The notes beneath the pieces are model-generated. The model searched no databases. It saw only the letters and a list, made by a program, of their open reading frames with translations, and was not told the DNA's origin. Shown here piece after piece: positions 1-62,015 of a stretch of 64,000 nucleotides of DNA. The translations under genes and the position numbers were made by a program. Where the stretch lies: positions 62,001 to 126,000 of the IMG/VR virus record IMGVR_UViG_3300042549_005931; one strand, given 5' to 3'. How positions within the stretch are numbered: the first letter of the stretch is position 1; each line of letters begins with the position of its first letter.

Positions 1-1047
1 TGCGTTATCAAAATCTAATGGAGTGTAGAACTTATTGAATGGTGTATTAATTGCTGAACAGTTTTGTACATATGGTGATGTTGAAATGTATGCACCGGGT
101 GCAAATGCGAAGAAGAAACCACTTCTTGGGTCTTCTAAATCATCAATTTCACAACCTTCCAATCTTAATCCTTGTGCATAACAACCATTATTCATTAAAA
201 ATAGATTATTACCTTTTGTTCCATTAGTAGGTCGTACAACTACAGACCTTAAATCATCACCTAAAAGTGAAACATTACTTACTAATGTAATTGGTGCCTC
301 TTCAACATAGTATCCACTTTTAACACGGATACTTGTTCTGTAAGGATAAGGATTTGGTGGATTTAATGCGAGTGATGCGGAAGCCGCTTGTGCCGCCACT
401 TTAATTGTTCTAAATGGTGTCGATAATGTTTTTCCATCATTTGAATCACTACCATCTTCACTAACATAAAATACTTTTTCAGTATAACCTACGTTAGTTA
501 AATTACTTCCATCACCATAAATTGAACCTGATACCTTTAACGAACCCGTAATTTCTGTTTTAGTGTTTATTCTTAAACCTTCGGTATTTGATATTGAAGC
601 CGTTGCGTTACCATCGGCAATTCTTGTTGTATTTAATCCGGTAACTCCACTTATTGGTATATTAATTAATTGACTACCGTCACCTCTAAATGAACCACTA
701 ATGTATCCTGTATCTTGTACGTGTAGATTACTACCACTTGTTAATATTAAATCACTATTTTGTGCAATTAAACCAGTATCAATATAACCAATTCCATCGG
801 TAACTATCAATGAACCTGTTATTCTTTGAGTACCTTCTAATCTAATACTACCACTAAGATTTATAGAACCCGTATTCGATGCGTTGGTGATAATTAGTTC
901 TTCAATCGATGTTCCTAATGAACCCGATTTTGCCATGAACGCCTTACCGTCAGTTGTGTTTAATGCTAATTCACCTAATTCAAGATTTGAATTTGTTGGT
1001 TTTTGACCTGATACACTACTCCTACGCAGTCTAATGATTTGTGCCAT
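1..1047 (-). CDS. Tail fibre/spike protein (3' truncated by window edge); N-terminal virion-attachment motif plus beta-helix (pectin-lyase/DUF1565-like) domain
   Basis: Not in ORF track. Read by hand from ATG at 1047: MAQIIRLRRSSVSGQKPTNSNLELGELALNTTDGK...VFYVSEDGSDSNDGKTLSTPFRTIKVAA...IRVKSGYYVEEAPI; open to position 1. Confidence 0.75.
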   Translation of the reverse strand, partial: MAQIIRLRRSSVSGQKPTNSNLELGELALNTTDGKAFMAKSGSLGTSIEELIITNASNTGSINLSGSIRLEGTQRITGSLIVTDGIGYIDTGLIAQNSDLILTSGSNLHVQDTGYISGSFRGDGSQLINIPISGVTGLNTTRIADGNATASISNTEGLRINTKTEITGSLKVSGSIYGDGSNLTNVGYTEKVFYVSEDGSDSNDGKTLSTPFRTIKVAAQAASASLALNPPNPYPYRTSIRVKSGYYVEEAPITLVSNVSLLGDDLRSVVVRPTNGTKGNNLFLMNNGCYAQGLRLEGCEIDDLEDPRSGFFFAFAPGAYISTSPYVQNCSAINTPFNKFYTPLDFDNA

Positions 1048-1113
1048 ATATATGGTTCTATTTTATATAAAATCTTGTGATATATATCACATTTAATTTG
1101 ACCTATATAGGTC
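1044..1113. repeat. Four consecutive perfect palindromes, each centred on TATA
   Basis: CCATATATATGG 1044-1055; ATTTTATATAAAAT 1060-1073; TGTGATATATATCACA 1076-1091; GACCTATATAGGTC 1100-1113. Confidence 0.9.
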
Positions 1114-1117
1114 TCTA

Positions 1118-1125
1118 TATAAATA
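1118..1125 (-). promoter_or_regulatory. Putative late promoter TATTTATA
   Basis: Motif recurs just upstream of many structural genes in the window. Confidence 0.6.
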
Positions 1126-1164
1126 CACAAAATTTCTATTTAAATAAATAAAATGTGAAAAAAA

Positions 1165-2934
1165 TTATAAACCGTATTTAGATTTTGTAACGTTAAAATT
1201 ATTTGTTACATCCAACGCACTTAATCCTTTGGTGTAAAAATAAGCGGCTCCTATTTTACCATCTAAGAATGTGGAACTAATTCCAGTTCCAATGTATCCT
1301 AAATATAATGGATTGGTTTCACCATATCCGTCACTACCATGTGCGGTTGAAGATACTTCAGTTGTATTAATGTAAACTTTTGTAGTATTTACGGTTGCGG
1401 TTATTTGTGATATAAATGTATATAAATACCACGTATTAACAGATACTGGATTAGTGGTGGAATCGGTTATCTTTTGAACTCCAGTTCCATTTGTTACGAT
1501 TCTTGTCTTACCGGCATTTGAAAACAACCCACCCCAATACCCATCAAATCCAAACGAAGATGATAACTTTCCAAACACGGGTTGTCCTTGTGTATTTAGT
1601 GCGGGTAATGTATCAAACTTAACCCAAACTTGAATAGTTCTTTGAGTTGATGTGTTTAGTGAAAAATTTGATTTATGTGGAATTTGAATAGTATCGTTTA
1701 CACCATCTAAATCAAATATACCACCATTGTCACTCAACCAAGTTGCACCATTTATAGTTGCATTATTTCCATTAACCGTTCTATCATTCCAATTACCCGA
1801 TATATAATCCGTAGCATTCAATTCCATGAATAATCCATCAGTTATAAGTGTTGAAGTAACCGTTGTTGGCGTTATACTTGGTGTAACACTATTTGTTGGT
1901 GTTATTGTTGTAGTAACACTTGGAGTTGGTGTAACACTGTTTGTTGGTGTTATTGTTGTAGTAACACTTGGAGTTGGGGTAACAGTGTTTGTGGGTGTAA
2001 TAGTATTAGTAGGTGTTACACTATTTGTTGGTGTTGGTGTTGGTGTTGGGTCTATAAATCTTGAATTATATGTTGCGTGTAATGATTGTATTTCAGCCAA
2101 TGTTAATGCTCCATTATATACTTTTACAAATGCAACATCCGCAGTTACAGGTTCAGAATTTGTGGTAGAAGTTGAAAATCTACCAAATAATCTTAATCCG
2201 TTAAATCCACTACTTCCATTACGAGTTCCATTTGTAGTTGATGGTGCGGTGGTTGTTGCGATGTATGATTTTGTACTGTTAGTTGTATTTAACCCATCAT
2301 TAGTCATCCATATAAAATGCCAAGCAGTATCTGCAGCAGTTGTATTACTTCCAACAAATGCATCATTAAAGGCAATATTCATTCTCGATGCGGGTGAACC
2401 CCACAATCCCATTAAGAAATCGGGTGAAGCGGTATTGGCGTTTAATAATCTACCTGCAGTTCCACCATCCCATTTATAAGCCATAAATACCGTCCAAGGT
2501 TGAGATGACGTTGAGTAATTTAAACCACTCACATAGAACATATCGGATGTACCCGTTGATGATTTTCTAAACACACCACCATTTGCACCATTCCAAGCCA
2601 TACTATTACCCGTATTTGTCATTGTTATAGTATATGCACCTGTTCCCGCAATTGTTGAGCCATTTGTTGGCATTGCCGAATAGTTTGCACCATCCAAATC
2701 AAATACTAAAGTAGCACTAATTGATGCTGGTGTTTTGCTTGGTGTTGGTGTAACCGTTTTAGTAGGGGTAATAGTATTGGTAGGTGTTACACTATTTGTT
2801 GGTGTTATGGTTGGTGTAACCGTTTTAGTAGGGGTTATTGTATTTGTTGGTGTAACCGTTGGGGTGGGTGTTGATGGCGGTACAAACGCATCAAGACTAC
2901 CAACTACAAACCCATTTTTAAAAATTATACCCAT
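1165..2934 (-). CDS. Virion-associated protein with two LamG/concanavalin-A-like domains joined by Thr/Pro repeats
   Basis: TPTNTV repeats; LamG-type motifs (FDLDGVNDTIQIP, TIQVWVKF, LDGKIGAAYFYTKGLS...NFNVTKSKYGL). Confidence 0.7.
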   Translation of the reverse strand: MGIIFKNGFVVGSLDAFVPPSTPTPTVTPTNTITPTKTVTPTITPTNSVTPTNTITPTKTVTPTPSKTPASISATLVFDLDGANYSAMPTNGSTIAGTGAYTITMTNTGNSMAWNGANGGVFRKSSTGTSDMFYVSGLNYSTSSQPWTVFMAYKWDGGTAGRLLNANTASPDFLMGLWGSPASRMNIAFNDAFVGSNTTAADTAWHFIWMTNDGLNTTNSTKSYIATTTAPSTTNGTRNGSSGFNGLRLFGRFSTSTTNSEPVTADVAFVKVYNGALTLAEIQSLHATYNSRFIDPTPTPTPTNSVTPTNTITPTNTVTPTPSVTTTITPTNSVTPTPSVTTTITPTNSVTPSITPTTVTSTLITDGLFMELNATDYISGNWNDRTVNGNNATINGATWLSDNGGIFDLDGVNDTIQIPHKSNFSLNTSTQRTIQVWVKFDTLPALNTQGQPVFGKLSSSFGFDGYWGGLFSNAGKTRIVTNGTGVQKITDSTTNPVSVNTWYLYTFISQITATVNTTKVYINTTEVSSTAHGSDGYGETNPLYLGYIGTGISSTFLDGKIGAAYFYTKGLSALDVTNNFNVTKSKYGL

Positions 2935-2940
2935 TATGTT

Positions 2941-2948
2941 TATAAATA
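2941..2948 (-). promoter_or_regulatory. Putative late promoter TATTTATA
   Basis: 6 nt upstream of ATG at 2934. Confidence 0.6.
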
Positions 2949-2986
2949 GAGAATTTTTTAATTTAAGTAAATTAAAAATTGAACCA

Positions 2987-3901
2987 TTATGTTATTTGAG
3001 TAACTGTTACAATTACCGATGGTGTTGCGGGTCTGGCAGGTGCCGATTGTGTTCCTTTATACTGTAATCGTCCATTTGCCGTTGTTTTTGACCAATACAA
3101 TTCTACATAACTACCAGATGAAATTGGAGTTAAAAAGTTTAGTGCCGCCACCGAAAATCCACCACCACTTACCTTTTCAATAGAGAAATCGGTATTTGAA
3201 TTATCTATATTAGAACCTGTCATAGCAAACCAAACAGAAAAATCAACTGATTCGTTTGATGTGGTGTGCAATTGTGCTGAAAATTGAATGTTATATAATC
3301 CCGTATTTTGTACATAAATTCTAGTTGGAAATCCACTACCATTATTTCCAACGTACATACCAGATATATCGGAAGTCGGTACTTCAAATTTCATAGAATA
3401 TGCAGTATCCGCAGAACCAGTTTGATTTTCTAACGAATACCATTGTCCGTAGTTGAATTGTTTGTTTCCGTTTTTATATATTGAACCATTTACATTTAGG
3501 GAACCTGACATGTTAATTGAACCCGTTATCCACTGTGAACCTGTTAGGTATTGTGAACCTGTCACGATGAATATTGAATTGTGAAAATTAGAACTACCAC
3601 TCACATCAATACTACCACTAATTGTGGTGTTACCCACAATTGTGTTTGTTCCTGTCATAAGAGTATTACCCACGATTGTGTTACTACCACTTAAATTATG
3701 GACACCTTTAAATGTTGTTGAACCACTCACATTAAAAGAACCGGTTACTACTTGGTCTCCGTGAAAATTATTATTACCATCTAATAATGTCTCTTTTGTT
3801 ACAGTATATGTTGTTGTGTTACTTGCGTTGTTCATTACAACATGAACACCACTGGTATCTCCACTAAATTGTGGTAATTGGTCTATTTTTCTATTTGACA
3901 T
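2987..3901 (-). CDS. Tail fibre-like protein with C1q/BclA-like C-terminal beta-sandwich
   Basis: MSNRKIDQLP N-terminus, G-S-x-x-I/V-T/S fibre repeats, C-terminal GLYNIQFSAQL...YVELYW...PSVIVTVTQ. Confidence 0.6.
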   Translation of the reverse strand: MSNRKIDQLPQFSGDTSGVHVVMNNASNTTTYTVTKETLLDGNNNFHGDQVVTGSFNVSGSTTFKGVHNLSGSNTIVGNTLMTGTNTIVGNTTISGSIDVSGSSNFHNSIFIVTGSQYLTGSQWITGSINMSGSLNVNGSIYKNGNKQFNYGQWYSLENQTGSADTAYSMKFEVPTSDISGMYVGNNGSGFPTRIYVQNTGLYNIQFSAQLHTTSNESVDFSVWFAMTGSNIDNSNTDFSIEKVSGGGFSVAALNFLTPISSGSYVELYWSKTTANGRLQYKGTQSAPARPATPSVIVTVTQIT

Positions 3902-4023
3902 TATTCGTTAGGTTGTAATTGTTCATCATCTTGACTTGTTACTATAACATTATCTTCGGTTAATAGTAATCCATTAACTTCTGTTATTGTTAAAATAAAT
4001 CCTTCTGTCATTATTATTGCCAT
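3901..4023 (-). CDS. Small acidic 40-aa protein, probably structural
   Basis: Below ORF-track cutoff. MAIIMTEGFILTITEVNGLLLTEDNVIVTSQDDEQLQPNE; TATTTAT box at 4027-4034; TAATG stop/start coupling to the 304-aa gene. Confidence 0.7.
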   Translation of the reverse strand: MAIIMTEGFILTITEVNGLLLTEDNVIVTSQDDEQLQPNE

Positions 4024-4058
4024 AACAATAAATACCTTAGAAAATAGAATTAGTAAAT

Positions 4059-4088
4059 AAAAAAGGAAGGATTTGAATCCTTCCTTTT
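4059..4088 (-). terminator. Intrinsic terminator (possibly bidirectional)
   Basis: AAAAGGAAGGATT-TG-AATCCTTCCTTTT inverted repeat with T-tracts on both strands. Confidence 0.8.
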
Positions 4089-4112
4089 AATTAATTACTA
4101 TTATACTTTAAA

Positions 4113-5777
4113 TTACACATAAGAACCCCCGTCAATCACTGTCGAGAATACCAATGCACCATTTGAATTCTTATAACCTAAAATTCCATCCATAACATCT
4201 GTTGTTGATGTTGTTGAAACATAACCTAAAATGTTAGATGAATTTCTAAATACGATTGCAGATGAACTTAAAGCGTTATCGGTACCACCTGAATATGATA
4301 ATGTTAAATTACCTGTTATCGTAGCATCACCAGTTCCTGAATCAACACTAAATTTATTAGTGTTAAGTGCCAATGTTGTACCATTATATGTTAACAAGCT
4401 ATTACCAATCGTACCATTAGATGTTGCAATAGGGAATGTTCCGTCAGTTAAACTTGTTTCAGAGCCCATTGAACCAGTTGTTACACTAACAATTTTACCT
4501 GTGTTTCCGTTACTATATTGAACCAACCAATAATCATTTATTGCATCCCATAAGAATGAACCTGACAATCCTGCAGAACCTGAATCATATGCAGATAAAC
4601 CAGCATATCTATCAAATGGTGAATAAGCGTTAACTTGAATGATGTTATCACCGATATTAACTGTATTAGATTCTAAATTAACATTGGTTGCAGTCCCAAA
4701 AACTTCTAAATTACCTGATACATATAAATTACCGTTTACACTTGTATTATTATCCAAATAAATTCCATTTGTACTATCAATTGTTACTGTTTGTGCACCA
4801 TCGTCAATTTTTAAATAATTTGTATCATCACCAAAGAAACTATATGATGCATTACCTTTAATATGAATATCAGAAGGGGCCGTATTATATATTCTAAAAT
4901 CTCTACCATCGTTTAAATCTGGTTTCAAATATAATGAACCCGTACCTTGAATATTTGTTACTTCAAGTGCACCTGATAAATTTAAATTACCGTTATCAAA
5001 TGTTAATCCACTGTAATTTGTTAATAAACCATTAGCACCCGCAACAACTAATCTTTTTTCGGTTAAATCTTCTACATACACAGAACCTGATAATATGGTC
5101 GTACCACTTACAATTAAATCCCCCGGTAATGAGATTGAATTAATAGCAATACTCTCCAAATTAATGTTTTCAATATACGCAGTTCCACTAACATACAAAT
5201 CATTCCATGCATTATCGGCACTACCTAAATCGAAAGTATTATTTAACGCCGGAATCAATGATGAACTAATTTCACCATTAATGTTAACAGTATCACCCGT
5301 TAAGTTATCACCGATATTGATATTACCTCTTAAAGTAACATCACCTGTTAATGTGATAGAACCTGTTTGGTAAGTGTTACCGGTCATGTTTAAATCACCA
5401 TCTAAACCTAAAGTTCCTGTTAATTTATTAATTGTAAGTCCTGAAATTGTATTTCCTTCAATATTACCTGTTAAATCGATATCACTATTACCATCCTTAC
5501 TTAAGATGTATAATGTTTTGTTACCTGTAGCGTAAAAAGGTGTTCCGTCAATTACAGAACCGTAAGAACCAACTGAAATTGTTGGTGCGGTTGAACCTTG
5601 AAAAATTTTAGAAACTGGTCTATACGCACCAGCAACACCTTCAGATTCACCAATGAACACCATTGGTCCGTTTAGGTCGTTGATGGAACCGGTAGCCATT
5701 ACAAATTCACCAACCCTTGCGGTAACGTCTTTTAGAGTACCAATTCCACCTCTTCTGTGTTTAATTATTTGTGCCAT
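4113..5777 (-). CDS. Tail fibre protein
   Basis: MAQIIKHRRG...VGEF N-terminus paralogous to the 1-1047 gene; Gly/Asn/Thr-rich beta repeats; C-terminal IDGGSY. Confidence 0.65.
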   Translation of the reverse strand: MAQIIKHRRGGIGTLKDVTARVGEFVMATGSINDLNGPMVFIGESEGVAGAYRPVSKIFQGSTAPTISVGSYGSVIDGTPFYATGNKTLYILSKDGNSDIDLTGNIEGNTISGLTINKLTGTLGLDGDLNMTGNTYQTGSITLTGDVTLRGNINIGDNLTGDTVNINGEISSSLIPALNNTFDLGSADNAWNDLYVSGTAYIENINLESIAINSISLPGDLIVSGTTILSGSVYVEDLTEKRLVVAGANGLLTNYSGLTFDNGNLNLSGALEVTNIQGTGSLYLKPDLNDGRDFRIYNTAPSDIHIKGNASYSFFGDDTNYLKIDDGAQTVTIDSTNGIYLDNNTSVNGNLYVSGNLEVFGTATNVNLESNTVNIGDNIIQVNAYSPFDRYAGLSAYDSGSAGLSGSFLWDAINDYWLVQYSNGNTGKIVSVTTGSMGSETSLTDGTFPIATSNGTIGNSLLTYNGTTLALNTNKFSVDSGTGDATITGNLTLSYSGGTDNALSSSAIVFRNSSNILGYVSTTSTTDVMDGILGYKNSNGALVFSTVIDGGSYV

Positions 5778-5818
5778 TCTTTGTTGTTTGTTTTATATTA
5801 TAAATACTTTATTTTTGT

Positions 5819-6634
5819 TTAGAAAAACCCATCCCCACAGTCAATTATATTCACATTTGTTTTATGTTCAGCCAATATAATATTTTGCATTTTAATTGAC
5901 GCCGATACTATCTGTGCATTTATTTGGTTTTCAACTATACTCATAGCTCCTGAAACTACTAATGATTCCATATTAGGGTTTAAAGTTTGAACCAATGTAG
6001 TCATACCCTCAACTCTTAAATTACCTTTAATAGTTACCGAACCACTAAGTAACATTGAACCAGTGTCAGTGGTGTTAATGATAACATTTGTACCGTCATC
6101 ATAAATCCTTGAATCGACTAAAATACCACTACCTGAAGATTTTTGTATGTAATTTAAATTACCACTACCAGTTTTTTGTAAAACAATTTTTTGTTCAGAA
6201 CCCGCAGGACCCGCTTTCCAATAATCACCGGTAGAATCCCACAATAAAGAACCTGAAATGGTATTTGGTGCGGTTGGGTCTCTTACGATTAGACCACCAT
6301 TCATTTGACCATTACCGTTTAATTCGATAATGTTGTCACCTAACTGTATTGTATTTGAATTTATTGAGGTGGTGGTTCCTAAAACTAATAAATTACCCTT
6401 TACTGTTAAATTGGACCCCGTGGTTTGAATTGCCTCTTTTATTGATGCGGAAAATAAATTTAATTCCTCCGTACCCTGAGTGTTTAAGAAATTTGAGAGA
6501 TTTAAACCAGATACAAATACCTCATCAAAATAACCATTTCTTAGAGCACCGCTAGGTGAACCCAAATTTATAATCGAACCTGATGGTACTTCGGCTGTAT
6601 TAATTTGCAGCCAATTTATCTGTTGTAATGCCAT
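5819..6634 (-). CDS. Tail fibre-related protein
   Basis: Shares the GNL.V.G...I.S....GDNII.LN...SGS.LWD...DYW module with 4113-5777; ends IDCGDGFF; TATTTAT box at 6654-6661. Confidence 0.6.
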   Translation of the reverse strand: MALQQINWLQINTAEVPSGSIINLGSPSGALRNGYFDEVFVSGLNLSNFLNTQGTEELNLFSASIKEAIQTTGSNLTVKGNLLVLGTTTSINSNTIQLGDNIIELNGNGQMNGGLIVRDPTAPNTISGSLLWDSTGDYWKAGPAGSEQKIVLQKTGSGNLNYIQKSSGSGILVDSRIYDDGTNVIINTTDTGSMLLSGSVTIKGNLRVEGMTTLVQTLNPNMESLVVSGAMSIVENQINAQIVSASIKMQNIILAEHKTNVNIIDCGDGFF

Positions 6635-8398: not shown

Positions 8399-8731
8399 TT
8401 ACTTAGTGGTTATTTTTTCGTAACCTCTATCATCTATGTAGATAATAGTCTCTAATTCGTAATCAAAGGACAAATCCGGTGGTAATTCACTTTCATCCAT
8501 TTCAGATATTTTCATGGCGATTAGTGTTTTTCTTAACAATTCAAATTGAACTTCTGTTAACATAACCTCACCACTATCCTCAAAGTTTTTTTGAGAAATA
8601 TTACCCAAATATCTAAAAAAAGTGTCCTCATCTATCTGTGATAGAAAGTATTCACGAGTTCCTTCGTTTTTACTAAAGAAATTTTTAACTGTCTGAATAT
8701 AGATGAGAACCTCGGGTGGAAAGTCTTCCAT
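8399..8731 (-). CDS. Hypothetical protein
   Basis: 110-aa ORF coupled by TAATG to nusG. Confidence 0.7.
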   Translation of the reverse strand: MEDFPPEVLIYIQTVKNFFSKNEGTREYFLSQIDEDTFFRYLGNISQKNFEDSGEVMLTEVQFELLRKTLIAMKISEMDESELPPDLSFDYELETIIYIDDRGYEKITTK

Positions 8732-11973: not shown

Positions 11974-12145
11974 GTCTTTTTATTTCATCTAAAATTTCCT
12001 TACGGAATGTTGCAATAAGTGATTTAACCTCTTGTGCGTTTTTTCTTGCTCTGATTGATGCACTGTGATTTCCTTTCACAAAAACTTTCTTAGTATCTAC
12101 CGATATCTTCTCAACCAGGTCCTTTATTTTTATTAAGGTTTCCAT
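11957..12145 (-). CDS. Histone H1-like protein (Hc1 family)
   Basis: KGNHSASIRARK...LIATFRKE resembles the Hc1 signature KGNKAAGTRARK; 62 aa. Confidence 0.7.
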   Translation of the reverse strand: METLIKIKDLVEKISVDTKKVFVKGNHSASIRARKNAQEVKSLIATFRKEILDEIKRHEGRD

Positions 12146-12183
12146 ATTATTTTGGTTTTTGATAGCAATATAGGGAAAAATAA

Positions 12184-18205: not shown

Positions 18206-19015
18206 CTATAAATAGTTTAATAGATTGAAACTCTCGTTTCTTAATTTCTTTATTGCCTTGTCTCTCAACTGTCTAATACGCTCTTTGGTACATCCAAACT
18301 CATCACCTAAGTCGTCTAAATTACATTCAATACCGTTTAATCCATAATATTTCTCGATAATAACTTTTTCTCTATCATCAAGTACGTTTAACATTTGAGC
18401 CACACGTTTTTTGATTTCTTCAGGAGTATTGAATATTTCTTCAGGATTTCCCGCATCCTTGTTTGGTATTAAATCAATCAATTGGTCACCATCTTCATTG
18501 ATTTCCTTAAACAATCCAACACAATATGGTAATGTGGTCGTATTGTCATTATTATTATCAATGTGGAACTTATCAATTTTATTTGTTTCGTTCTTCTTAT
18601 TTTTTTGAGCCTCTTGAACTAAGTTAGATGGTAGTCTAATTGTTCTTGCATTATCATTTAATGAAGCCATGATAGATTGTTTAACCCACCACACCGCATA
18701 TGATATGAATTTTAAACCACTTTTAGGGTCGAAACGTTCTGTTGCTTTGATTAATCCGATATTACCTTCTGATATTAAATCTAACAAGTCTAAACCCTGT
18801 CCTTGGTACATTTTGGCAACAGAAATAACAAATCTTAGGTTACCTAATACAAGTTCTTCTAATAATTTATCCTTTTCTTTCTTGGTTGTATTAGAATCAA
18901 GTAACAATTTAAATATTTCGTCTTGTCTTTGGTGACTTACGATGGGTATTTTACGAATGTCTTTTATATACTGATTTATTTCATCGGTACTGATAAGAAC
19001 GGCAGGTTTTCTCAT
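18206..19015 (-). CDS. RNA polymerase sigma-70 family factor (RpoD-like, no region 1.1)
   Basis: NLRFVISVAK.Y, DLISEGNIGLIKA.ERFDP..G.KFISYAVWW, RTIRLP, TKERIRQ...AIKKLR. Confidence 0.92.
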   Translation of the reverse strand: MRKPAVLISTDEINQYIKDIRKIPIVSHQRQDEIFKLLLDSNTTKKEKDKLLEELVLGNLRFVISVAKMYQGQGLDLLDLISEGNIGLIKATERFDPKSGLKFISYAVWWVKQSIMASLNDNARTIRLPSNLVQEAQKNKKNETNKIDKFHIDNNNDNTTTLPYCVGLFKEINEDGDQLIDLIPNKDAGNPEEIFNTPEEIKKRVAQMLNVLDDREKVIIEKYYGLNGIECNLDDLGDEFGCTKERIRQLRDKAIKKLRNESFNLLNYL

Positions 19016-60635: not shown

Positions 60636-62015
60636 TTAAATTGTTTGATTTTCTCTTTGTTGTCTAGCCCTAAACGCTTCTACCGCTCTGTTTGCTCTGT
60701 CTTGTGTCTTTTGTTCTTCATGACCAAGTAAAGTATTTTGACTATCGGTATCAATAATTAACATTTTATTATCGAATTTACAATTTTGGAATATAATTCC
60801 ATCTTGTCCAATACGTGATTTTAATAAACTTAACGTTGCTAAGTTATGTTCTTTCTGTTCTAATGTCTTAGCTATAGAAATAATAACGTGTGCAATTTGA
60901 GCTTTCTTAATTGAACCACCCATTTGGTCACTTGTTACAACCTCTGATGAGATTGAATCTCTACTACCTTGTGTCGCCGTCCAAATCGCCATGTTAAACT
61001 CAGTTGTCATAGATTCAAGACTTCTCATAACAGAACCCTCGCCTTTCCATTCTTCACCGTTAACACTCTTATCTGTACTAACACAGTCAACATAATCCAA
61101 AATCAACATATCAGGTACAAATCCTTCTGAGATTAGTTTTCTAATTTTTGATTTAATCTTAGATACGGTTGCGTCATCACTTGACATCTTAATCATTTTC
61201 AAAACACCTTTAGAACGAGCCTGAGCTTCAAGTACCTTTTCTTTTACCTCCTCAGCGTATTCAGGTTGGTCATCCGGTTCAACATTTGTCCAAATGGTAA
61301 AGTGTTTTCTTCTTACGTTATCACGATTATCTTCAAAGAAGATTTGTAACACATTGAAGTCATTGTTAAATGCGGTGTTTGCAAACTTGGTTAAGATTGT
61401 TGTCTTACCGGTACCAGTCGGTGCCAAGATAATACCCAATTCACCACGTCCCAATCCACCTTTCAATAAATTATCAATACCCACAATACCTGTTGGGATT
61501 GGTAATCTAAAATCTTTTTCTAATGCCGAATCAATATCATGAAACACATCAACAATATCATTATCATCGGTACCAACTTGTAATGCCTTCTGAATGATTT
61601 GTTCTATTTTATGGTACTCCTCAAAGTTACCATTTTCAATAATGTGGTTAACGTTTTTTAATTCCTTTTTAAGATTTTGTTGCTTACAGAAGTTCAACGC
61701 TCTGTCTTTTACAAAGTGTGTGTCTTTGTCATCGTTTTTGATTTGCTCTAACGTGTCAATGTGAATACGGTTTGAATCCTTATTCCCACTTTCCGACATG
61801 ATTTTTTGAGCAATTGTATCATAATTTGGAATCTTCCCATAAGATGAATACAATTCTTTCACATTTTCGATAATATATCTAAATGAATTGTTATCAAAAA
61901 ACTTTGTTTCCAAAACTTCGATAATGGTATCACCATATTTTCTATCCTCAATAATCGCTTTTAACAACGATTGTTGAAAGGAAAATCCTAGGTGTCCAAA
62001 ATTTCTTTCTTCCAT
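60636..62015 (-). CDS. dnaB: Replicative helicase (DnaB/T4 gp41-like)
   Basis: PTG...ID..L.GG...GEL, APTGTGKT, ILDYVD, WTATQ, LKSR.G. Confidence 0.9.
   Translation of the reverse strand: MEERNFGHLGFSFQQSLLKAIIEDRKYGDTIIEVLETKFFDNNSFRYIIENVKELYSSYGKIPNYDTIAQKIMSESGNKDSNRIHIDTLEQIKNDDKDTHFVKDRALNFCKQQNLKKELKNVNHIIENGNFEEYHKIEQIIQKALQVGTDDNDIVDVFHDIDSALEKDFRLPIPTGIVGIDNLLKGGLGRGELGIILAPTGTGKTTILTKFANTAFNNDFNVLQIFFEDNRDNVRRKHFTIWTNVEPDDQPEYAEEVKEKVLEAQARSKGVLKMIKMSSDDATVSKIKSKIRKLISEGFVPDMLILDYVDCVSTDKSVNGEEWKGEGSVMRSLESMTTEFNMAIWTATQGSRDSISSEVVTSDQMGGSIKKAQIAHVIISIAKTLEQKEHNLATLSLLKSRIGQDGIIFQNCKFDNKMLIIDTDSQNTLLGHEEQKTQDRANRAVEAFRARQQRENQTI

Follow-up and report, generated by a model that had tools for sequence, protein, structure and literature searches.

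The region examined lies within a 64,000-nucleotide stretch (the window, positions 62,001 to 126,000 of IMG/VR record IMGVR_UViG_3300042549_005931) of a 269-kb viral contig from lake water that has 32% G+C and is about 81% complete. The contig belongs to a distant T4-like jumbo myovirus that encodes a baseplate wedge, a gp46/SbcC-like nuclease, NrdAB, a DnaB-type helicase, a sigma-70-family factor and ribosomal protein bS21. Freshwater phages of this size that encode bS21 have been assigned to Bacteroidetes hosts, which generally lack Shine-Dalgarno (SD) use (PMC9723584), and this fits the SD-less leaders seen here; that paper provides host context only. A megablast of window positions 1-6000 against GenBank phages found no near-identical record.

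On the minus strand, a gene for a 589-aa virion structural protein (2934 to 1165) is followed, after its stop codon, by a 117-nt spacer and then by a tail-fibre gene whose 5' part occupies positions 1047 to 1 of the window. The full fibre gene encodes 723 aa (genome 60876-63047), matches PHROG tail-fibre and baseplate families, and begins with the N-terminus MAQIIRLRRS..GELALNTTDGK, a domain shared with annotated cyanophage tail fibres and predicted to be a small beta domain of four short strands (pLDDT 79). Read in the direction of transcription, the spacer holds a promoter-like TATTTATA box (1125-1118), followed after 4 nt by GACCTATATAGGTC (1113-1100), after 8 nt by TGTGATATATATCACA (1091-1076), after 2 nt by ATTTTATATAAAAT (1073-1060), and after 4 nt by CCATATATATGG (1055-1044), the last of which contains the ATG (1047-1045). 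No terminator-like site lies between the upstream gene and the box, nor anywhere in window positions 900-1400, and a scan of the leader for sigma-70 promoters and terminators gave nothing above chance.

A first-pass annotation had noted four perfect palindromes of 12-16 bp with a TATATA centre between the box and the ATG, with centres 23, 17 and 17 bp apart and the start codon within the last, and this observation is confirmed. The total number of palindromes of 12 bp or more in the window is not elevated (22 observed, about 28 in dinucleotide-preserving shuffles), but their clustering is. Four within 80 bp occurred in 0 of 200 such shuffles of the window, and four or more occurred in 12 of 20,000 shuffles of the 121-bp spacer itself. 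It is the only cluster of three or more such palindromes in the 269-kb genome. One correction is needed: the gene at 5777, which the annotation called a paralogous fibre gene lacking such a leader, is only a weak, repeat-level relative (BLASTP E = 6e-5) and does not share the MAQIIRL N-terminus.

The box itself recurs in this phage. TATTTAT[A/T] is found on the sense strand within 60 nt upstream of 61 of 293 genes, as compared with 20 in the antisense orientation, at about 15 times the genome-wide density, and its commonest distance to the ATG is only 3-4 nt. It is taken here to be a phage promoter element that gives very short or no leaders, although this role is inferred and has not been mapped. 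Upstream of the fibre gene the box is 70 nt from the ATG, and the first hairpin begins 4 nt after it, at the spacing where coding begins in 17 other genes; the fibre mRNA therefore probably has an exceptional, structured leader that opens with hairpin 1. Two metatranscriptome runs hold only short assembled contigs, which cover the fibre ORF up to position 1039 and not positions 1200-1980 of the upstream gene; this is compatible with a separate transcript start, but such contigs neither map a 5' end nor prove transcription.

Taken one at a time, the hairpins are weak as RNA. Unit 1, GACC-UAUAUA-GGUC, has a predicted energy of -6.2 kcal/mol; unit 2, (U)GUGA-UAUAUA-UCAC(A), -4.9; unit 3, AUUU-UAUAUA-AAAU, whose stem is entirely A/U, 0; and unit 4, CCA-UAUAUA-UGG, -2.3. 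The minimum-energy fold of the whole leader (-15.1 kcal/mol, z = -3.2) buries the AUG by pairing palindrome 2 with palindrome 4, but this alternative is peculiar to this phage, where every centre is a (UA)n run, and is not predicted for its clade.

Loci retrieved through the fibre N-terminus, and through a DNA pattern built on the fourth element, showed that hairpins 1, 2 and 4 are conserved in relatives whose N-termini are 55-87% identical. The changes are compensatory: GACC/GGTC to GACT/AGTC, GTGAT/ATCAC to GTGGT/ACCAC, and G·U at closing positions. Unit 1 is 100% paired across 13 distinct homologous leaders, with C-G to U-A and G-C to A-U double changes and G·U variants, while two pairs of unit 2, which corresponds to GUGG-UAUAUA-CCAC in relatives, show G-C to A-U and G-C to U-A changes. 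In a 14-sequence clade alignment 93% of cells are paired (21-42% when partners are slid), four pairs show double changes, and 0 of 500 shuffles reach the observed covariation score; RNAalifold predicts the same three hairpins without guidance. Hairpin 3 is found only in this lineage, relatives having a purine-rich spacer or a different small palindrome in the same stretch. Nor is the spacing of the palindromes conserved, as relatives show centre-to-centre distances of 12-64 nt.

To avoid selecting on the RNA, a 13-sequence alignment of the N-terminal 70 residues was used to fetch 80 more loci. Of 69 distinct leaders in this protein-selected set, 52 carry 1-4 units, each defined by at least three complementary pairs flanking T-A-N-A-T-A and having a variable stem of 3-10 bp. 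This gives 89 units, against a mean of 2.0 (maximum 7) in dinucleotide shuffles and none in 64 coding-sequence windows of the same loci; about a quarter of the homologous leaders have no unit. When every TANATA hexamer is counted regardless of pairing, flanking positions 1-4 are complementary at 80, 75, 69 and 56% of leader sites, compared with 36-47% in coding sequence and about 37% when arms are swapped among sites. All four positions pair at 73 of 179 leader sites against 6 of 150 coding sites, with 33 different 4-nt arms. When instead every hairpin is counted regardless of its loop, 68 of 203 (33%) in leaders have a U-A closing pair plus an ANAU loop, against 3 of 468 (0.6%) in coding sequence, and no other loop type occurs more than four times. 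The third centre position is U in 62%, C in 21%, A in 11% and G in 6% of units. The constant apex is better described as U-A-N-A-U-A, an ANAU tetraloop closed by a U-A pair with its third position free, than as the UAUA loop first proposed.

The non-palindromic centres TA[C/A/G]ATA occur in 34 units and their mirror images TAT[G/T/C]TA in 2, so two positions that are equivalent in duplex DNA, position 3 of the centre and its dyad mate, position 4, are under very different constraint. Strictly internal G·U pairs outnumber A·C by 12 to 3, arms differ between sites within one genome but covary between genomes, and units are found on the sense strand of the gene. Together these features point to hairpins in the mRNA and disfavour a dimer-type DNA operator or a cruciform with a symmetric role, although a sense-strand single-stranded DNA hairpin is not strictly excluded by sequence alone.

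The units also bear a defined relation to the start codon. In 23 of 24 start-proximal units in the protein-selected set the centre starts at exactly -5, so that the last A of UANAUA is the A of AUG, as in unit 4 of the window. When the second codon is Ser (TCN) instead of Ala, the 5' arm changes to match, as in GACA-UACAUA-UGUC of one relative's locus (L240). In GC-richer phages with visible SD sequences, a single unit ends just 5' of the SD, for example GCGTATATACGC about 30 nt upstream of the ATG. In this genome, units containing G-C pairs occur in an intergenic region only in the fibre leader. Across 1.48 Mb of fetched loci, 93 units (at least 4 Watson-Crick pairs, at least 2 G-C) lie within 150 nt upstream of fibre-type starts, and about 10 genuine ones lie elsewhere.

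The interpretation offered in the first-pass annotation, an array of RNA hairpins with variable stems and a constant loop acting as a multivalent translational operator for an RNA-binding protein that sets tail-fibre stoichiometry, is partly supported. Its core, the hairpin array in the leader, is strongly supported: the annotation had specified in advance that a lack of comparable hairpins or compensatory changes in homologous leaders, or frequent clusters of this kind in composition-matched shuffles, would count against it, and homologous leaders do carry such hairpins with compensatory changes while the clusters do not arise in such shuffles. Neither the reading of the loops by an RNA-binding protein nor a purpose in fibre stoichiometry has been demonstrated. 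Its alternative, a symmetric DNA operator or cruciform, is disfavoured.

The palindromes are best explained as the DNA image of an array of small hairpins in the 5' leader of the late fibre mRNA. Transcription most likely starts a few bases after the TATTTATA box, which would place unit 1 at or near the 5' end of the RNA, where it may also protect that end. Unit 4 pairs the AUG into its 3' arm in a fixed register. The stems, especially the 4-bp stem around the AUG, are too weak to block a ribosome by themselves, yet the apex is conserved across phages of very different hosts. The most likely mechanism, which we consider about as likely as not, is therefore that a loop-specific factor binds the units cooperatively and, by stabilising the last one, occludes the start codon, making the leader a multi-site translational operator that sets or times fibre synthesis. 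The structure, its strand, its conservation, its gene specificity and its register with the AUG rest directly on the analyses above, whereas the start of transcription, the existence and identity of the factor, repression as the direction of the effect, and the biological purpose (matching fibre output to assembly) are inferences. Start-codon occlusion cannot in any case be the universal mechanism, as in SD-using phages and T4-like cyanophages the units lie upstream of the ribosome-binding site and do not include the AUG.

No binding factor was identified. The T4 RegA operator is an unstructured A/U-rich site at the AUG, whereas the site here is structured and covaries, and RegA (PF01818) does not match in this genome, which is about 81% complete. 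No informative Pfam domain was found in the small genes flanking the fibre gene. At E < 1e-3 the only genes this phage shares with the unit-bearing siphovirus S-CBS2 are the fibre N-domain genes and a sigma-70-family factor, and that sigma factor was rejected as the common reader because it is absent from five unit-bearing T4-like cyanophages. The reader would then be a factor too divergent to detect, a universal host component, or the fibre protein itself.

Comparison with described systems shows both parallels and differences. The coat-protein operators of the RNA phages MS2, Q-beta and PP7 are small, weak hairpins with the start codon of the regulated gene in the 3' arm, recognised by loop bases so that the stem sequence is largely free, and repressive only when stabilised by protein. 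The AUG is similarly placed in unit 4, but the RNA phage operator is a single hairpin with an ANYA loop and a bulged A that is read by the capsid protein, whereas here up to four units with unbulged stems and an ANAU loop closed by U-A are found in dsDNA tailed phages; binding by a structural protein of the phage was not assayed. CsrA/RsmA-regulated leaders likewise carry several short hairpins with a shared loop motif, bound multivalently by a small protein, the last overlapping the ribosome-binding site. In the present set the last unit covers the AUG itself in 23 of 73 protein-selected leaders, but the loops are UANAUA and not GGA, and the phages concerned have leaders that lack the SD sequence that CsrA targets. 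Lambdoid nut/boxB hairpins and HK022 put RNA are promoter-proximal elements whose loops carry the specificity, but they act on transcription elongation, boxB having a GNRA-like pentaloop read by the N protein; nothing here points to antitermination, and the AUG register points to translation. The 5'-terminal stabiliser hairpins of the E. coli ompA and T4 gene 32 leaders, followed by further leader structure before the start codon, need no particular loop sequence, whereas here the loop is the most conserved part. ROSE and fourU thermometers have two to four leader hairpins, the last holding the start region, but pair the SD sequence through specific internal motifs and have no constant apex, whereas this leader has no SD sequence and does have a constant loop. 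The PeSL cassettes of T4-type phages are many near-identical promoter-plus-stem-loop copies spread over one genome, unlike the single locus found here.

An alternative that seems possible but less likely is a purely cis-acting structure with no dedicated factor, in which the 5'-terminal hairpin protects the late mRNA from 5'-end-dependent decay and the hairpins around the AUG simply damp translation in a host that does not use SD pairing, or make it temperature-dependent. The position of unit 1, 4 nt after the box here and 4-8 nt after the NATAAATA late-promoter motif in five cyanophages, the burial of the AUG in the fold of the whole leader, and the failure to find a factor are all in its favour. 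It does not explain, however, why the apex is constant while stems vary freely across hosts as different as cyanobacteria and probable Bacteroidota; the AUG stem (about -2.3 kcal/mol) and the 3-bp GG/CC unit of cyanophages are too weak to act alone, and the pairing of palindromes 2 and 4 is specific to this phage. More doubtful is a processing or decay signal, with the A/U loops recognised or cleaved by a host or phage endoribonuclease that uncouples the fibre mRNA from upstream transcripts or limits its lifetime. The units do lie directly after the stop codon of the upstream gene at many loci, the single-stranded apex is strand-specific, and a widely conserved enzyme would fit the diversity of hosts, but a four-base loop is a poor substrate for the known single-strand-specific RNases, a point not tested here, and the fixed register with the AUG is not needed for processing; no read-level RNA data bear on this.

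A signal acting on transcription appears unlikely, whether as nascent-RNA hairpins or non-template-strand TANATA elements that pause or modify RNA polymerase in the manner of put or nut sites or sigma-dependent pausing, or as hairpin-type promoters. The array is promoter-proximal, TANATA resembles A/T-only -10-type elements, TAAATA is part of the T4 late-promoter motif, the phage encodes its own sigma-70-family factor, and in some relatives (loci L140, L205, L207 and L211) unit 1 is a long stem followed by a T-run. Yet a promoter or pause element has no need for covarying arms, a promoter at the last unit would start downstream of the ATG, the G+C-rich stem and T-run of an intrinsic terminator were not found in this leader, and the sigma factor is missing from the five cyanophages. 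The hairpin promoters of N4, read by a virion RNA polymerase, have a 5-7 bp stem and a 3-nt loop upstream of the transcription start; the 4-nt loop and the overlap of the last unit with the ATG argue against this type, but the polymerase repertoire of the phage was not surveyed and the comparison does not settle the matter. Least likely is a DNA-level element such as an operator for a dimeric protein, a cruciform, or a single-stranded DNA hairpin serving as a retroelement or nuclease target. All four sites are perfect DNA palindromes in this phage, which carries a gp46/SbcC-like nuclease, and fibre genes are classic DGR targets. However, differing and covarying arms are the opposite of what a sequence-read operator shows, and the 34 to 2 asymmetry of the centre and the G·U excess also oppose this reading. 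A DGR target site goes with a reverse transcriptase and template repeat in the genome and a hairpin just 3' of a variable region; the DGR idea was rejected because reverse transcriptase (PF00078) does not match in the genome, and the units are tied to the 5' end and AUG of the downstream gene.

A more speculative possibility, to be held only tentatively, is that the units are read by the product of the gene they precede. Free, unassembled fibre would bind the UANAUA loops through its conserved basic N-terminal domain (MAQxIKLKRS..GELA.N..DGK), a trimer facing up to three conserved units, and shut off its own translation until consumed by tail assembly. This would explain why the cis element travels with this one protein domain across myoviruses, siphoviruses and hosts as distant as cyanobacteria and probable Bacteroidota, although those phages share no other detectable candidate gene. 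The N-domain model shows no RNA-binding fold, giving only insignificant matches to phage fibres, hyaluronidase N-termini and collagen trimerisation domains. Direct recognition by a universal host machine such as the ribosome is an equally open variant.

The unit is widespread and appears not to have been described before. In cmscan searches of Rfam in E-value mode, no family matched window positions 900-1300 at E up to 10 or four cyanophage loci at E up to 1, and literature searches on tail-fibre leader stem-loops, cyanophage intergenic palindromes and UAUAUA hairpins found no description. It is a candidate new RNA family, best described as a protein-type leader operator, and, even without a known function, a useful annotation marker for fibre genes and their true start codons in metagenomic phages. 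Post-transcriptional control of tail-fibre synthesis in tailed phages is largely uncharted, and this element, with its clear covariation signature, is tied to a single, very widespread fibre N-terminal module. If a loop-specific factor exists, this would be a new RNA-protein recognition pair and a new example of assembly-coupled gene control. The element also bears on how Bacteroidota-infecting phages, which lack SD pairing and here carry their own bS21 and sigma factor, tune translation of individual late genes.

The N-terminal domain is found in annotated tail fibres of T4-like cyanophages and a few other phages, and 6 of 14 cultured phages examined have units upstream of the gene, making the question directly accessible at the bench. 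Units are present in P-SSM2, S-CAM9, S-SRM01, DSL-LC03, B3 and S-CBS2 (P-SSM5, whose fibre N-terminus is identical, was not examined), and absent in S-SKS1, P-HM2 gp7, S-T4, S-SCSM1, ACG-2014f, S-CAM7, Vibrio phage 1.208.B and Ralstonia phage PY059YO380. The T4-like carriers share one layout, in which a T4-type late-promoter motif (NATAAATA, as known for these phages) is followed after 4-8 nt by unit 1 with a variable stem, by a short second unit GG-UANAUA-CC, and then by 6-22 nt to the AUG. The GGUAUAUACC core is the same as hairpin 2 of the window's clade.

Genome-wide, the TATTTAT[A/T] element lies only 3-6 nt upstream of the ATG of 22 genes, an example being the copy at window positions 2942-2949, which precedes the ATG at 2934. 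If this element is of the -10 promoter type, many mRNAs of this phage would be leaderless or nearly so, which would be notable for a phage that also encodes ribosomal protein bS21 and its own sigma factor. The latter, at window 18206-19015 on the minus strand, is a sigma-70-family factor with Pfam Sigma70_r2 and Sigma70_r4 domains, and is 27% identical to the RpoD-like gp061 of the cyanosiphovirus S-CBS2; it may be the protein that reads the TATTTATA box. The bS21 homologue (PF01165, 44 bits) is encoded outside the window, at 178797-178949 (+) of the genome contig (G000:C1), and its presence places the phage among the bS21-encoding freshwater phages predicted to infect Bacteroidetes.

Many relatives (L073, L102, L109, L117, L140, L177, L181, L189 and L207 in our numbering of fetched loci) have two consecutive genes with the same N-terminal domain, of which the first has no hairpins and the second has the hairpin leader. 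Upstream genes often end with ..IDGG(S/T)(F/Y)-stop. In three cyanophages, S-SKS1, P-SSM2 and S-SRM01 (loci L253, L254 and L262, respectively), an HNH endonuclease gene sits immediately upstream of the fibre gene; the fibre leader region may be a recurrent insertion site for free-standing homing endonucleases.

Two further unit-like hairpins with 8-bp stems were observed away from the fibre leader: ctattatc-TACATA-gatgatag, at window 8427-8448 (-), inside the 3' end of a 110-aa gene, and aataaatc-TAAATA-gatttgtt, at G000:C1 160521-160542 (+), 41 nt upstream of a 408-aa gene. They could be chance occurrences or additional targets. Outside the window there are also two other groups of three palindromes. 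The group at G000:C1 33058-33187 shares an AATATT centre (ATTTAATATTAAAT, ATTAATATTAAT and TTTTAATATTAAAA), whereas that at 11980-12165 has unrelated centres; these could be operators or an origin. The longest perfect palindrome in the genome, at 28 bp, lies outside the window at G000:C1 249108-249135 and consists of an A-run, a G+C-rich stem and then a T-run, an arrangement that looks like a bidirectional intrinsic terminator.

In one DNA run, one assembled contig ends at window position 1114 and the next begins at 1148, at the edge of the palindrome array, and it is possible that short-read assemblers break here. Within the 589-aa upstream gene, at about 1860-2060 and 2740-2870 of the window, metagenome contigs show very high depth and many skip or go-back joints, which indicates a repetitive, length-variable segment that is shared with many other genomes.
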